64,000 nt of DNA from positions 124,001 to 188,000 of the forward strand of contig OZ025747.1 in the NCBI GenBank assembly GCA_964019335.1, in the 5' to 3' direction. Origin of the DNA: Diplonema japonicum (Eukaryota; Protista; Euglenozoa: Diplonemea). The position numbers and the translations under genes were made by a program. Position 1 is the first letter of the stretch, and each line of letters starts with the position of its first letter. Of this stretch, positions 998 through 50,078 are shown in pieces. Under the pieces are notes generated by a model. It was not told the DNA's origin. It did not search any database and saw only the letters and a program-made list of their open reading frames with translations.

Positions 998-2131
998 ATG
1001 TTACGCAGGACCGGTTTGCTGAGATTCTTCGAGACGCAACATAGGCAGAAGAAGCACCCTTACCTTGCCATGGCACGGCCGGTATGCATGAGATCCGAGC
1101 AAAAAAAAAAAAAAGAAAATCTTTTTTAAAAATAAAAGGGCGAACTTATGTTTCTCCCTCCCTTCAGCATGAACGGGTGCGTCCCTGGTCTTATCATCTG
1201 CCTCATCTACATCTTCTATGACAAATTCTTCGGCGAGTCTTCCGTGACGGAGCACCACCACAGCAGGTATGATTGTTTTTTATTTCTTTTCTTTTTTTTT
1301 TATACTTCTTTACTGGGCAGAGTCTCTCATAGTCCCCCACGTGTGCCCTAATGATAGCCAATGGGTGTGGGGTCTCCCAGAGGCTCAAGATTTCCCCCTC
1401 CCCCTCCCCCATGGAATAGTATTGTGGCAAGCAAAGGAAGGTGTCTCTCATAGTCCCCCACGTGTGCCCCAATGATAGCCAATGGGCGTGGGGTCTCCCA
1501 GAGGCACAAGATTGAACGCTTCATAAAACTACTCCCAGAGTCTCTCATAGTCCCCCACGTGTGCCCCAATGATAGCCAATGGGTGTGGGGTCTCCCAGAG
1601 GCTCAAGATTTCCCCCCCCCCCCCCCCCCTCCCCCATGGAATGGTATTGTGGCAAGCAAAGGAAGGTGTCTCTCATAGTCCCCCACGTGTGCCCCAATGA
1701 TAGCCAATGGGCGTGGGGTCTCCCAGAGGCACAAGATTAAAACACTTAATATAGCTACTCCCAGAGTCTCTCATAGTCCCCCACGTGTGCCCCAATGATA
1801 GCCAATGGGTGTGGGGTCTCCCAGAGGCTCGAGATATATTGATAAGATTTTCATAGGGACGGGAATGGGGGAAGAAAAAAAAAAAAAAAAAACCAGATTC
1901 CAGTACGGTATGTTTGGTGAGAGGGTGTCGTATCCTGCCAACGGGACTGCCCTGAGTATGTTACAACACGGGAGGGAAACCAAGCACAACACAGCTTTCA
2001 ACTGCCCGGGTGTTTCTGCTTTCGGTTCCTCAGAAATGTGGAACCACGGTAGCTCGAACCCGAAGCTTTCTCCCTTCTCTGAGGACAGAAAAGTGGGTGT
2101 GCCTCGGGATCATGGGCACGGGCACCACTAG
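998..2131 (+). CDS. Spliced small mitochondrial membrane protein, probable complex I subunit NDUFB3/B12-like
   Basis: Exons 998-1081, 1139-1266, 1897-1955, 1995-2131 (the last intron is in frame and less certain). Gives MLRRTGLLRFFETQHRQKKHPYL...PGLIICLIYIFYDKFF...HHHSRFQY. Short MLRRT targeting signal, one TM helix, and an FF..KHPxL / PGL pattern resembling plant/algal B12. Confidence 0.55.
1320..1837 (+). ncRNA. Intronic tandem array of 5 box-AGA (single-hairpin H/ACA-like) snoRNAs: 1320-1393, 1441-1514, 1538-1611, 1666-1739, 1764-1837
   Basis: Lower stem G(A/T)GTCTCT / AGAGGC(T/A)C covaries between copies. Upper stem CCCCACG / YGTGGGG. AGA box plus 3 nt after the stem. Pocket CATAGT + CTCCC is complementary to LSU H69 GGGAG-UA-ACUAUG. 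Confidence 0.8.
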
Positions 2132-2424
2132 ACGGTGTCTCGAGCAGGAGGGGAAATTTATGTATTAAAAAAAAAACCAAAGTGTTTCCTTTCTTTCTCC
2201 CCCCCAGTTCCCCCCACGCTACAACCTCGGTAAAAAAAGAGTCAGCCTGAACAAAAAGAAGAAGAGAACGAAGAAAAGAAAAAAAAAGAAATGAAAAAAA
2301 TGAAACACCGACTCTTTTTTTTTTTTTCCACTTCAGTGTCTTTCCGTCAGAAACTGTTTAAATGTATTTTTTTTTTATTGTTGTATTTTCATCTTTTCCC
2401 ATGTACCCCCGTGTTAAAGGGACA

Positions 2425-2910
2425 ATGGCCGAGGATGCACACTTGGCAGCAGCGTACCTTCTGGAGGCTGCAAAGGATATGAGTTGTGTAAATGAAAAAC
2501 TAAGCCGGATAGTGTCAAGAAGGTTGCTCAGAGTGGTTGGTCGGAACATGAAAAGGGAAAGGAAGCAAAGTGAAGCAAAAGAAGTGCTGGAACACGTATG
2601 TGGAGGCTGTGGTAATTTTTTCGTGGTGGGTCGGACTGCTGAGCTGTCATGCGTGGACCAGTCGGAAAAACTTGAAAAAATCGACATCAATCTTGCAAAA
2701 TACATAAGCCCTGAGGTAATGGGCGAGAAGTTCAAGATTACCTGCAAAAACTGCGGCAAGACCACCGTCTCGGCAGAGCAGCGGTCGATAAAAACGGTGG
2801 CGAAGCAGCAGCATGCCGCGCAGCAGCAAGAGCAACAACCACCTTCTAAAAAGCAAAAAAAAGAAGTCCTCGCTGCCCCCCAACCGAAAAAACAGCCTAA
2901 AAGCAACAGC

Positions 2911-2944
<34 letters not shown>

Positions 2945-3030
2945 GCGGCAACAAGAGAAAAGCGAAACAACAGCAACAAAAACAAACTCAGCCGCAATCG
3001 TCGTTCATGGATTTCATGAAGCAAATGTGA
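2425..3030 (+). CDS. RNase P/MRP subunit Rpp21/Rpr2/Snm1-like zinc-ribbon protein with a low-complexity K/Q/N tail
   Basis: N-terminal helices (YLLEAAK...LSR), VCGGCG and ITCKNCGKT Zn pairs. Confidence 0.65.
2911..2943 (+). repeat. (AAC)n microsatellite encoding poly-Asn
   Basis: About 11 tandem AAC triplets in frame. Confidence 0.9.
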
Positions 3031-5052: not shown

Positions 5053-5787
5053 ATGGATCCACAAAGCCCGCTTTATAGATTTGCGTCGCATCAAGCAGAT
5101 GACTGGGAGTCTGTGTCGTCCACCGGTGTGTGGGGGCATCCAGATCTGGTCAATGGGGATCAGCTGTTCGAAGCTATGGGAGAGGCGTACGCGGCGAAGA
5201 GGCTGAAGGAGCTCGAGGGTGAAAGGAGGTTTCGCGCACCTGCACCGCAGCAGTTATACCACCAACAGCGGCAACAACAACCTCCACCTCCTCCTCGGGA
5301 TCGGTATCAATCTAAACCGGCGCAAGCCTACCATCAAAGACCGCCTTTGGAGGTCGAAGACCGGGATTGGAAAAGACATGCGCCTGTCTCTGCTCCTGCT
5401 GTTCCTCCTCCCCCTTCTCCAATTGCTCCTATTGAAGTACCGACAGAAAGTGTTTCCGGCTTAGCCGACTCAATACTCCACGATAGCAGCAGCGGTTTAG
5501 GGGACTCAATCGATGGTGAGCTTTACACTAAATTGTCGCCCCACGGGACGTTGATAAGGGGTGCCACGCTGCCCCCAGGGGTGCACGCTGCAACAGGCGG
5601 CGATGTGGACAGCTTTCGAGTTCAACTGCGACAGGAATTTTGGAAGGAGTTCATGCAGTCTTATGACAGGCGGTGCGCCGCGACATATGTCTCGAAGAAC
5701 AAGAAAGGCGGCGATCGCAACAAAGGCACCGGCAAGCCTTCCCCACGGATACCCGACCCACGCAAAATTCCCCGACCCATACGATAG
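5053..5787 (+). CDS. Hypothetical Pro/Gln-rich protein
   Basis: 244-codon ORF, coding-like composition between homopolymer spacers, A-run before the ATG. Confidence 0.65.
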   Translation: MDPQSPLYRFASHQADDWESVSSTGVWGHPDLVNGDQLFEAMGEAYAAKRLKELEGERRFRAPAPQQLYHQQRQQQPPPPPRDRYQSKPAQAYHQRPPLEVEDRDWKRHAPVSAPAVPPPPSPIAPIEVPTESVSGLADSILHDSSSGLGDSIDGELYTKLSPHGTLIRGATLPPGVHAATGGDVDSFRVQLRQEFWKEFMQSYDRRCAATYVSKNKKGGDRNKGTGKPSPRIPDPRKIPRPIR

Positions 5788-5889
5788 ATTTTCTTTTTTT
5801 TTTTTTTTTTTTTTTTTTTTTCTGTTTTTGGTTTGTTTGTTTTTGCCATTGCACCGTACCTACGAAAGAAGAGGGAGAGGGAAGAGAAG

Positions 5890-35425: not shown

Positions 35426-36338
35426 ATGTCCCGTTCTTCATACGACATCTCGGTGTTCTCCCCTGAGGGGAGGTTGTACCAGGTGGAGTATTCGTTCAAG
35501 ACGCTAGCACACGAAGCGCTGACAAATGTGGGTTTGACCGGGGAGGGGTGTGCCGTGGTGGTGTGCCAGAAGAAAGTCCCTGACAAGCTTCTGAAGGAAG
35601 ACAGCATTACACACGTGTTCAAGGCAGCTAAGGACATCGGCATGGCGATGTCAGGGAGGGTCCCTGACTGCGCCTCTGTGGTGGACGACACTCGCCACGA
35701 AACAATGGAGTTTGCGCATGACTTCGGGTACGACTGTGACGTGGCTTGGCTTGCGAAAAGAATGGGCGAGAAGGCGCAAATTTCGACTCAACGAGCGGGC
35801 CTCCGCCCTCTTGGTGCAGGTACCATCCTCTTTGGCATGGAAATGCTCGACAGTGGGGAACAGGTTCCTAGGGTATGTTCGAGGGGAAAAAAAAAAAAGA
35901 AAAAAAAAAAATCCCAGATTTTCACCATCGATCCTGCAGGGCTTGTCATCGCGTACAAGGCGACTTCGATGGGTCAGAAGGATAACGAGGTGAAATTGAA
36001 CCTTGAGAAGCAGTACAAACCGAACATGAGCGTATGAGTAGGGAGAGGACAAAAAAAATAAAAATATAAAAAAAAAAATTTTTTTTTGTTTAGTTGGATG
36101 ACACTATCATGACCGGTATCCAGTGCCTTCAGAAATCGCTGGGGAGCAGTGAAAGCAACCTGACTGCTGCTGACCTTGAAGTTGCGGTGTGTTAATTTGG
36201 AAGAGGGAAAAAAAAAAAAAGAAAAAAAAAAAAAAAAAAAAAAAAAACCAGGTCGTAACAGCCGACAACACTAAAGTGAGATTCTTGGATGCTACATCTG
36301 TGGAAGAATACATCACCAAAATCGTGGAAAGAGATTAG
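35426..36338 (+). CDS. PSMA6: 20S proteasome alpha subunit (alpha1/PSMA6-like)
   Basis: YDISVFSPEGRLYQVEY, QKKVPDKL, TQRAGLRPLG, DPAG. Introns 35873-35917, 36032-36093, 36187-36251. Confidence 0.88.
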
Positions 36339-36853: not shown

Positions 36854-37144
36854 GTGTCTCTCATAGTCCCCCACGTGTGCCCTAATGATAGCCAATGGGC
36901 GTGGGGTCTCCCAGAGGCACAAGATTGAACGTTTCATAAAACTACTCCCAGAGTCTCTCATAGTCCCCCACGTGTGCCCTAATGATAGCCAATGGGTGTG
37001 GGGTCTCCCAGAGGCTCGAGATTTCCCCTCCCCCTCCCCCATGGAATGGAATTGTGGCAAGCAAAGTAAGGTGTCTCTCATAGTCCCCCACGTGTGCCCC
37101 AATGATAGCCAATGGGCGTGGGGTCTCCCAGAGGCACGAGATTT
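36854..37144 (+). ncRNA. Intergenic array of 3 copies of the same box-AGA snoRNA: 36854-36927, 36951-37024, 37071-37144
   Basis: Same 74-nt unit and the same two alternating spacers as 1320-1837. Confidence 0.78.
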
Positions 37145-37234: not shown

Positions 37235-37929
37235 ATGGGTGAGGTAGCGAAAGTAACGGAAAACGACGAGTGGAAAGAGATCGTGAAGAAGATGGACTAT
37301 TTGCAGATAAGGAGGGAGGTATGGGCCAAAAAAAAAAAAAAATAATAATCCCCCTTTAGATCTTAGACGCAGCCGCGGACGATCCGGAGTTTAACAAGTT
37401 GATGGTAGGCTGCTTTGTGAGGGTGGTGGTACTGGTGGACTATGGGAGAACGAAAAAAAAAATGGGGAGGGTAGCAAGGGTTGACGCGGCTGTGGACGCA
37501 AAGGACGGAGAGGAGGTGTACACGATGGCGAACAACTCAAAAAGTAGCAGAAAGCTCCGGGTGTGGTTCGACGGTAAGGTGAAGCTCATTAAAGTAAGTT
37601 CCATAAGTGACACAGTGTTCAACAAGGCGGAACTGCAGTGCTGGCGGGCGACCCTCGAATACCACAAGGAAGAACCCCCCAGCCTCTCTTTCATCAGCGA
37701 AAAGCGCCAGGCTTTCCGCGACTACCTTGATAGAAAAAAGCGCACCTCCCTTTCCGTTGAGTCCATGCTCTCCTCTGACCCAAAACGTGTGAAGAAGGAT
37801 GATCATGGGAACCTCACTTACCGACCCCCTCCGAAAGCTGAGACACCAGCCGCCCCCACCACCTCCTCCGAGTCTTCTATGCTGCCACCCGCGCTACTCC
37901 CGAAACCACCTATGCCTACTTCAATTTAG
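37235..37929 (+). CDS. Plus3-domain protein (Rtf1-like domain)
   Basis: Intron 37319-37359 gives LQIRREILD...PEFNKLMVGCFVRV...SISDTVFNKAELQCW, which matches the Plus3 pattern. Confidence 0.7.
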
Positions 37930-48545: not shown

Positions 48546-50078
48546 CTGCTAACTTGACCCCTAAGTTTGAGAAATGTTCAAGGTCTATCTTTAAAGAGGA
48601 AAAAGTTTCTGATCCAGTCCCCAAGGTTTCTTAAATCTCTGTGTAGTACCCCAAATCTTCAAAAAAACTCATACTCGACCCCTAGGTTTTAAAATGCTTG
48701 AATTCGGTCCCCTTAGTTTCATAAATGCTCAAAGTAGACCCCCTTGGTTTTCAAAATGTTCAAATCCGGACCCCTTAGTTTCCAGAATGCCCAACCTGGG
48801 CCCCCTATGTTTCATAAATGCTCAACAATATTTTTTTCACCCCAACATTTCCTACAGCTCTTTTTCCCATCATAATATCACAAAAACCAATCCATTTTAA
48901 AATGCCTACAACCCAGTCAAAGATTGTTGCTGATGCGGTGTTCTCAGACATGGCCAGACATGGCTGAGGCGTGAAGAGAGGCCTTCTCGGACTGCTACAA
49001 GAGCGGTCGGGTGTTTAGCACTGTGAAAACCACCAGCGAAAAGGTGGTACTTGCCTGCTGCACTGAAGACTGCCAATGGAGGGTGGTGTTCCGGAATAAA
49101 GAAGGGGGGGCATATGTAACATGCCTCCCCATACCTGCACCCTATCCAACCATGGAAAGAAGGCACCAGTTGGCACTGCTGATTGGGTTGCAAGGATGCT
49201 TCGGGACAAGGCGGAGAAATCCTCCGGTTAAGGGCCAACCCAGGCGATGACTGACATACTGGTCTTCAGGGAGGCAGGCATTGGACTTTCCTCTGCTAGG
49301 AGGGCTAGGGAGACTCTTTTCGGATCAGCATCCAGTGCCTATGTGAAGTCTCCCCATACTTCGATGACCTGAAGGCAATCAACCCTGGCACCTTTTTTGA
49401 CATCGAGAGGGACTCAGGGTCGCGCTTCAAGTGCTGTTTTTTTTTTTTTTTTTGCCTTCGCCCCTCAGTCAACGGTTTCACTTATGTGGAGCCCATAATT
49501 TCGATGGAACACACCTGGGTGACTTTGGGGGGGGGTTCTGCTTCAAAAGGTGTAGGGAGGAATAAGAAGAGGATCCCCAGCAAGAGCGAAAGGAAGAATG
49601 CCTGCAGTCGTTGTGGCATTCTTGGCCACAAGACTTCGATCTGCACCAACCCTCCTGGTCCTCCCAAGAAGCAAAGGTTTTCTTTTAAATGCTGTAATCT
49701 TTTACACAGGAAGACACCTTTGGCGCAGCCCTCTAAGAAGTAGCCTTGGTCACCCTGGGCTGTCTTTTTCTTTTCTTTTCAAGTTGCCTATTGTTAAGGA
49801 ACATGCATGCGCACAACCTTGTTGAGCGCTAATGAAACTTAGGGGACCCATTCGGGTTATTTGTGAAACTAAGGGGGGGTTTTTTGAGCATTTTGAAAAC
49901 TAAGGGGTTGACTTTGAGCGATTTCCCGCCGTAGGGGCCTAGTTAGGGCATTTGAAAACCTGAGGGGGCGGACTTTGAACACTTTGAAAACTTAGGGGGG
50001 CGGGATTTGAGCGTTTTGAAGACTTAGGGGGTGGACTTTGAGCATTTTGGAAACTTAGGGTCAAGTTAGGACTCTACC

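Follow-up and report, generated by a model that had tools for sequence, protein, structure and literature searches.

The window analyzed here is a 64,000-nt stretch of the Diplonema japonicum genome (contig OZ025747.1), and all of the long open reading frames (ORFs) in it are on the plus strand. Near its start, a tandem repeat at 1318-1835 was identified by Tandem Repeats Finder, with a period of 225 bp, 2.3 copies, and 94% matches. Reading and alignment of the sequence revealed that each 225-bp period is a dimer that consists of two variants (A and B) of one 74-nt unit (Table 1). The layout of array 1 is as described in the first-pass annotation, with five 74-nt units of alternating types at 1320-1837. 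The A-type units have the form GAGUCUCU...AGAGGCUC and the B-type units the form GUGUCUCU...AGAGGCAC. The spacers also have a fixed order, in which S1 (47-54 nt) follows A units and S2 (23-24 nt) follows B units. Array 1 begins and ends with an A unit, and array 2 begins and ends with a B unit. Array 2 is intergenic, located after an ORF that ends at 36037 and before a gene that starts at about 37236. The frame of the latter gene is broken at 37320-37359 by a GTATGG...TTTAG segment that resembles a cis-intron of 40 nt and shares its initial GTATG with the candidate intron at position 1268 (Table 1). Array 1 is flanked upstream by a gene for an NTM1-like N-terminal methyltransferase (86-853; PF05891, E = 2e-22) and downstream by a gene with a weak match to an RNase P Rpr2/Rpp21-like zinc ribbon (2362-3030; E = 1e-5, under the Pfam cut-off); both genes share the orientation of the array.

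Table 1. Coordinates of the repeat units, spacers, arrays, and candidate intron in the window.
Feature	Position	Strand	Description
Array 1	1320-1837	+	Five 74-nt units, A and B types alternating
Unit A1	1320-1393	+	Hairpin followed by N-AGA-NNN; A-type (A2-U66)
Spacer S1	1394-1440	+	C-tract, then a semi-conserved stretch of about 30 nt
Unit B1	1441-1514	+	B-type (U2-A66, with G22-C47)
Spacer S2	1515-1537	+	Only the last bases (CUACUCCCA) common to copies
Unit A2	1538-1611	+	A-type
Unit B2	1666-1739	+	B-type; identical to B1 over 71 nt, from hairpin foot to AGA
Unit A3	1764-1837	+	A-type; final unit of array 1
Array 2	36854-37144	+	B-A-B (units 36854-36927, 36951-37024, and 37071-37144), with S2 and S1 spacers as in array 1
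Candidate GT...AG cis-intron holding array 1	1268-1896	+	629 nt; would join ORF 1148-1267 in frame to 1897-2131

In the 62.5-Mb assembly, 10 full copies were identified by BLAST and with a covariance model derived from the unit sequences, rather than the eight given in the first-pass annotation. The covariance-model scan scored the best 150 first-look candidates, such that very divergent copies could escape. Five of these copies are in array 1, three are in array 2, and the remaining two are lone copies on contigs C100 and C96.

When correctly framed, every unit folds into an 8-bp lower stem (with one G.U pair), a pocket, a 7-bp upper stem, a 6-bp apical helix, and a 5-nt loop. This fold agrees with the two stems, internal loop, apical region, and trailing N-AGA-NNN that were noted at first reading, and has the 6-bp apical helix besides. 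The pocket is composed of 7 nt on the 5' side (CAUAGUC) and 6 nt on the 3' side (UCUCCC). The AGA is invariant in all 10 copies and is located 1 nt (A or G) after the lower stem. The minimum free energy of the units ranges from -25 to -31 kcal/mol. The correctly framed units have z-scores of -3.4 to -3.6, and at most one of 200 shuffled sequences (0-1/200) folds as well, whereas the reverse strand folds worse (z -1.0 to -2.1). The distance between the top of the pocket and the AGA, originally given as 14 nt, is correct if the count starts at the first rRNA-pairing base of the guide, but is 15 nt if it starts at the upper stem. In the consensus fold by RNAalifold, two more pairs are closed inside the pocket (A12-U56 and G13-C55), which is common for free guide RNAs.

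The boundaries of sequence conservation coincide with those of the hairpin. In an alignment that included 15-nt flanks, the identity among all 10 copies runs from the first base of the lower stem to the AGA (plus one U), and the flanks are unrelated between loci. Units of one type differ by only 0-2 nt over 71 nt. The spacers are more variable. For example, about 35% of the positions differ between the S2 copies at 1515-1537 and 1740-1763, whereas the units adjoining them are identical or 1 nt apart; the S1 copies have approximately three substitutions in 30 nt as well as changes in the length of the C-tract. The retention of the hairpin and AGA while the spacers diverge suggests that selection or gene conversion acts on the unit and not on the whole repeat.

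The substitutions within the stems are all of a kind that retains pairing in the eight arrayed copies. The C/T variant at position 47 only changes G-C to G-U and back (pair 22:47), in agreement with the initial description of the upper stem, and the variants at positions 28 and 30 only change C-G to U-G (pairs 28:46 and 30:44). At pair 2:66, A units have A-U and B units have U-A, and this holds in eight of eight arrayed copies. The lone copies combine an A-type 5' strand with a B-type 3' strand, resulting in an A.A mismatch at this pair, such that the lower stem has 8 bp in the arrayed copies and six contiguous pairs in the lone copies. The compensatory A-U/U-A swap that had been pointed out in the first-pass annotation is thus present in the arrayed copies but is one evolutionary event amplified by duplication and is contradicted by both lone copies; moreover, 40 of 500 shuffles were as good, such that the swap is not significant, and the comparison involves paralogues only. 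The expectation that copies across the genome would keep the stems and the AGA is borne out for the AGA in 10 of 10 copies, with one stem mismatch in the lone copies. Pattern scans of metagenomes for orthologues returned no loci in the first round and 10 chance-level loci in the second, none of which has the AGA or the stems.

A predicted target for the pocket is found in the large-subunit (LSU) rRNA of the same organism. Helix 69 reads ...GGC-GGGAG-U-A-ACUAUG-ACUCUC... in seven rDNA copies, which confirms the GGGAG-UA-ACUAUG that had been given for eukaryotes at first reading. Within the pocket, CUCCC on the 3' side is complementary to GGGAG and CAUAGU on the 5' side to ACUAUG, which would leave U-A unpaired under the upper stem, 15 nt from the AGA. 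This predicted guide duplex has 5 + 6 Watson-Crick bp, or 5 + 7 with the opening of one pair of stem I. When the pocket was aligned to the organism's own SSU, 5.8S, and LSU rRNAs in nine registers, as had been proposed, helix 69 was the single best site (11 Watson-Crick bp, compared to 7 for the next best). The target U is at LSU position ~2327 (L013:1506), which corresponds to position 1911 in E. coli 23S rRNA, and the pairing supports, at the sequence level, the earlier suggestion that the guide would bracket the equivalent of Psi1911. In bacteria, RluD, a stand-alone protein enzyme that works without a guide RNA, modifies this position of helix 69 (Psi1911 in E. coli 23S rRNA) as well as 1915 and 1917.

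The specificity of this match depends on the stringency of the search. Shuffled pocket strands attain 11 bp in 10 of 2000 trials, and a loose Psiscan-like scan yields four to five false candidates of at least 11 bp per 64 kb of reversed sequence; given these false candidates, the pocket match alone is not decisive. In a strict Psiscan-like scan, which combined a stem I of at least 7 bp, a stem II of at least 6 bp, the AGA, and a distance of 13-16 nt, only the eight units pass in the window, and none of 22 control sequences of 64 kb gives a match of at least 10 bp. In pattern searches of the organism's own genome for RNAs that could guide the two U's that follow in helix 69, the counts were below those of the reversed-pattern control, and no convincing hairpin was among the matches.

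The H/ACA-like RNAs of trypanosomatids provide a reference for evaluating these units. According to the rules used by Psiscan, such RNAs are single hairpins of 57-91 nt whose AGA is located 3 nt from the 3' terminus. Stem I is perfect, has 5-8 bp, and is separated from the AGA by 1-3 nt. The pocket strand on the 5' side measures 5-11 nt, stem II is perfect and has 3-7 bp next to the pocket, and the apical loop contains at least 5 nt. The target position is 13-16 nt from the AGA, and the guide duplexes have 3-9 bp on each side of an unpaired U-N (PMC2613932). The units fall within all of these structural limits, with a length of 74 nt, stems of 8 and 7 bp, a 7-nt 5' strand, and a 5-nt loop. The sum of the 3' pocket strand, stem I, and the spacer to the AGA is 15 nt (6 + 8 + 1). 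The geometry of trypanosomatid and Euglena single-hairpin AGA guides that had been invoked for the array is consequently in line with the published rules (PMC2613932). The only departure concerns the base 1 nt upstream of stem I, which is A or rarely C in a frequency rule derived from trypanosomatids that is not absolute (PMC2613932); this base is A in the A-type and lone copies and G in the B-type copies.

Judging by these sequence features, each unit of ~74 nt is very probably a gene for a single-hairpin AGA-box H/ACA-like snoRNA that would guide pseudouridylation in helix 69. Alternatively, the hairpin RNA may be made without being a Cbf5 guide, or the copies may be decaying duplicates that now have no function. 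In trypanosomes, a class of 'AGA-like' RNAs has the same structure and is not destabilized by Cbf5 depletion (PMC2613932), and the stem mismatch in the lone copies is also consistent with such explanations. However, this alternative is improbable given that the pocket has a unique match of 11-12 bp in the right geometry at a site that is pseudouridylated in a relative, and decay in particular is difficult to reconcile with units that are far better conserved than their spacers.

Comparison with the guides of helix 69 in Trypanosoma brucei further supports the assignment of the target. Helix 69 of T. brucei has five pseudouridines, namely LSU-beta 518, 522, 524, 528, and 530, each with its own guide encoded by a solitary snoRNA gene; that for Psi518 is TB9Cs2H1 (PMC10662448). 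The 4-2-4-2 spacing of these positions matches that of the helix-69 U's (GAG-U-AAC-U-A-U-GAC-U-C-U), which indicates that Psi518 corresponds to the U bracketed by the units described here. Five helix-69 pseudouridines are likewise present in Leishmania (PMC11156624). Based on a published probe, TB9Cs2H1 is about 75 nt in length and ends in ...CCG-AGA-AUU (PMC4855143 supplement). It resembles the RNA predicted for the D. japonicum units in being a single AGA-box hairpin of about 75 nt with its 3' end 3 nt past the AGA, and its target is the first of the five pseudouridines in helix 69. From the probe, we infer that its 3' part has a pocket strand similar to CUCAC, located about as far from the AGA as in these units. 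The units are accordingly best described as putative functional equivalents of TB9Cs2H1; the comparison is by guide logic and probe, and the claim is one of equivalence and not of orthology. The genomic organization differs, in that TB9Cs2H1 is a solitary single-copy gene in T. brucei, whereas D. japonicum has 10 copies, eight of which are in two tandem arrays of alternating isoforms. Clustered and reiterated AGA-box guide genes on the coding strand of polycistrons are also typical in trypanosomatids and Euglena. However, the clusters found here contain one guide species in two isoforms instead of C/D and H/ACA-like genes mixed together. For diplonemids, we found no paper that describes H/ACA-like guides.

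The canonical two-hairpin H/ACA snoRNAs share with these units a Cbf5-type pocket, which has a bipartite guide, an unpaired U-N, and a distance of 14-16 nt to the box. However, the units lack a conserved H box and a second distinct hairpin, have AGA instead of ACA, and have no Rfam H/ACA match. More generally, no Rfam family matches the window at the gathering score, relaxing the threshold to E values up to 10 for 1100-2100 yielded chance-level matches only, and ARAGORN identified no tRNA in the window. It is conceivable that the functional RNA is a B-spacer-A dimer that forms a two-hairpin H/ACA RNA, in which the H box would be supplied by the AGA of the B unit with the bases after it and the ACA box by the AGA of the A unit. 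The 225-bp repeat period is that of a dimer, and the AGAUUA of one B copy fits ANANNA. Yet the remaining B copies have AGAUUG or AGAUUU, which do not fit, and the hinge would be about 30 nt in length and differ at a third of its positions between repeats. Moreover, array 1 begins and ends with A units and array 2 with B units, one of the lone copies is a single hairpin, and both hairpins of such a dimer would guide one site. For these reasons, we consider a dimeric RNA highly improbable.

The lone copies provide information on how the units may have spread. The marker at position 47, which is linked to pair 2:66, differs between the two lone copies, and because of this difference they look like single-step intermediates or A/B recombinants. 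One of them is followed by a truncated second unit. A block of ~250 bp with ~97% identity precedes both lone copies (L020:1575-1826 on C100, at ~66.6 kb, and L021:2009-2262 on the minus strand of C96), and it starts directly after a polypyrimidine tract and AG. The presence of the same block in front of both lone copies suggests that the guide and the block were spread jointly by segmental duplication. In addition, the flanks of array 1 and of the lone copy X1 are related.

These duplications, together with the false positives of the loose guide scans, could also be taken to mean that the array is a repeat at the DNA level, such as a satellite or a mobile or duplicated segment that carries a hairpin, and that its likeness to a guide is coincidental. 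This explanation is highly improbable. The limits of conservation are exactly the hairpin foot and the AGA and not the ends of the repeat, there are only 10 copies, which have neither terminal repeats nor coding capacity, the strict scan has zero control matches of at least 10 bp, and the predicted target is a known pseudouridine site. Two-hairpin, reverse-strand, and CRISPR-like readings were ruled out on anatomy.

If the units are single-hairpin guide genes, as we favor, their mode of action can be outlined as follows. The arrays, which have the orientation of the genes around them, would be transcribed within a long precursor. Single hairpins would be trimmed out, with the 3' end about 3 nt after the AGA. 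Each hairpin would assemble with Cbf5, Nop10, Gar1, and Nhp2. The open pocket would then pair with LSU helix 69, with one more base of the 5' strand engaged if the lower stem breathes, and U-A would stay unpaired where the upper stem begins, at a distance of 14-15 nt from the AGA. Finally, Cbf5 would convert the bracketed U (LSU ~2327) to pseudouridine. The genome encodes one Cbf5/dyskerin domain (DKCLD). Transcription, processing, protein binding, and modification of the predicted guide are what we infer from these features; the sequencing runs that contain this stretch are DNA-like only, with no RNA run among them.

Under the same assignment, the array is a small cluster of near-identical guide genes, which is an ordinary kind of gene for Euglenozoa and involves no change to existing knowledge of how such guides work. 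Its tandem A/B isoforms and possible intron host are the only mildly unusual aspect. The intersubunit bridge B2a of the ribosome is formed by helix 69. In T. brucei, cells that lose helix-69 guides die or have altered translation (PMC10662448). A guide for the first helix-69 pseudouridine in a euglenozoan outside of the trypanosomatids would extend the single-hairpin AGA-box system and this conserved modification across the phylum. With this assignment, a sequence that would otherwise be called a satellite also receives a clean annotation. The two-isoform, multi-copy layout represents a small case of guide genes spreading by tandem and segmental duplication, in which apparent single-step intermediates of a compensatory stem change (i.e., the A.A copies) are still present.

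The immediate setting of array 1 is compatible with several interpretations. The ORF at 1148-1267 encodes a predicted membrane helix and ends at AG|GTATGA, and the ORF at 1897-2131 would continue in frame after ...CCAG|, such that the two may be exons joined across a candidate intron (Table 1). The upstream ORF (exon 1) has a weak match to NDUF_B12 (E = 0.12), and searches with the ORF of exon 2 against 5.8 billion clustered proteins and 1.84 billion representatives returned no homologue. The candidate acceptor at 1896 is preceded by poly(A) and not by pyrimidines. A polypyrimidine tract and CAG are present directly upstream of unit A1, which allows for two other readings: 1268-1319 may be a mini-intron of 52 nt, or the tract and CAG may act as a spliced-leader acceptor. 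It is possible, though rather doubtful, that array 1 resides inside a genuine 629-nt GT-AG intron of a small lineage-specific membrane-protein gene and would thereby form an intron-hosted polycistronic array of one guide. The guide is present here in 10 copies, compared to a single essential gene in trypanosomes; if the intron is genuine, this would suggest dosage-sensitive control of helix-69 pseudouridine and splicing-coupled guide release in a lineage that relies mainly on trans-splicing.

The wider genomic context is also informative. A spliced-leader sequence that ends in CAGTTTCTGTACTTTATTG has 232 occurrences in the genome, compared to zero for the control. The part upstream within this leader presumably resembles the leaders of diplonemids. 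The spliced leader and the same-strand ORFs together indicate that the organism is a euglenozoan, i.e., a member of the group in which such guides are known. The spliced-leader exon sequence is dispersed over most contigs (e.g., L022:1480-1520 and L023:1480-1520) and not confined to one tandem array, and the copy in L022 is located directly after a long poly(A) tract. This dispersal could reflect either SL RNA genes scattered over the genome or retroposition. The rDNA repeat has a length of only 6,825 bp (L019, C119:5200-12100), with a spacer of ~790 bp between LSU and SSU. In contrast to the six-piece LSU of trypanosomatids, the LSU here is in one piece without large insertions, as judged by Rfam coverage. 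Elsewhere in the window, a T-rich tract is present at 5781-5847, and two arrays of ~31-nt repeats (48677-48825 and 49883-50060) have consensus units that are reverse complements of each other, forming an inverted pair about 1 kb apart.
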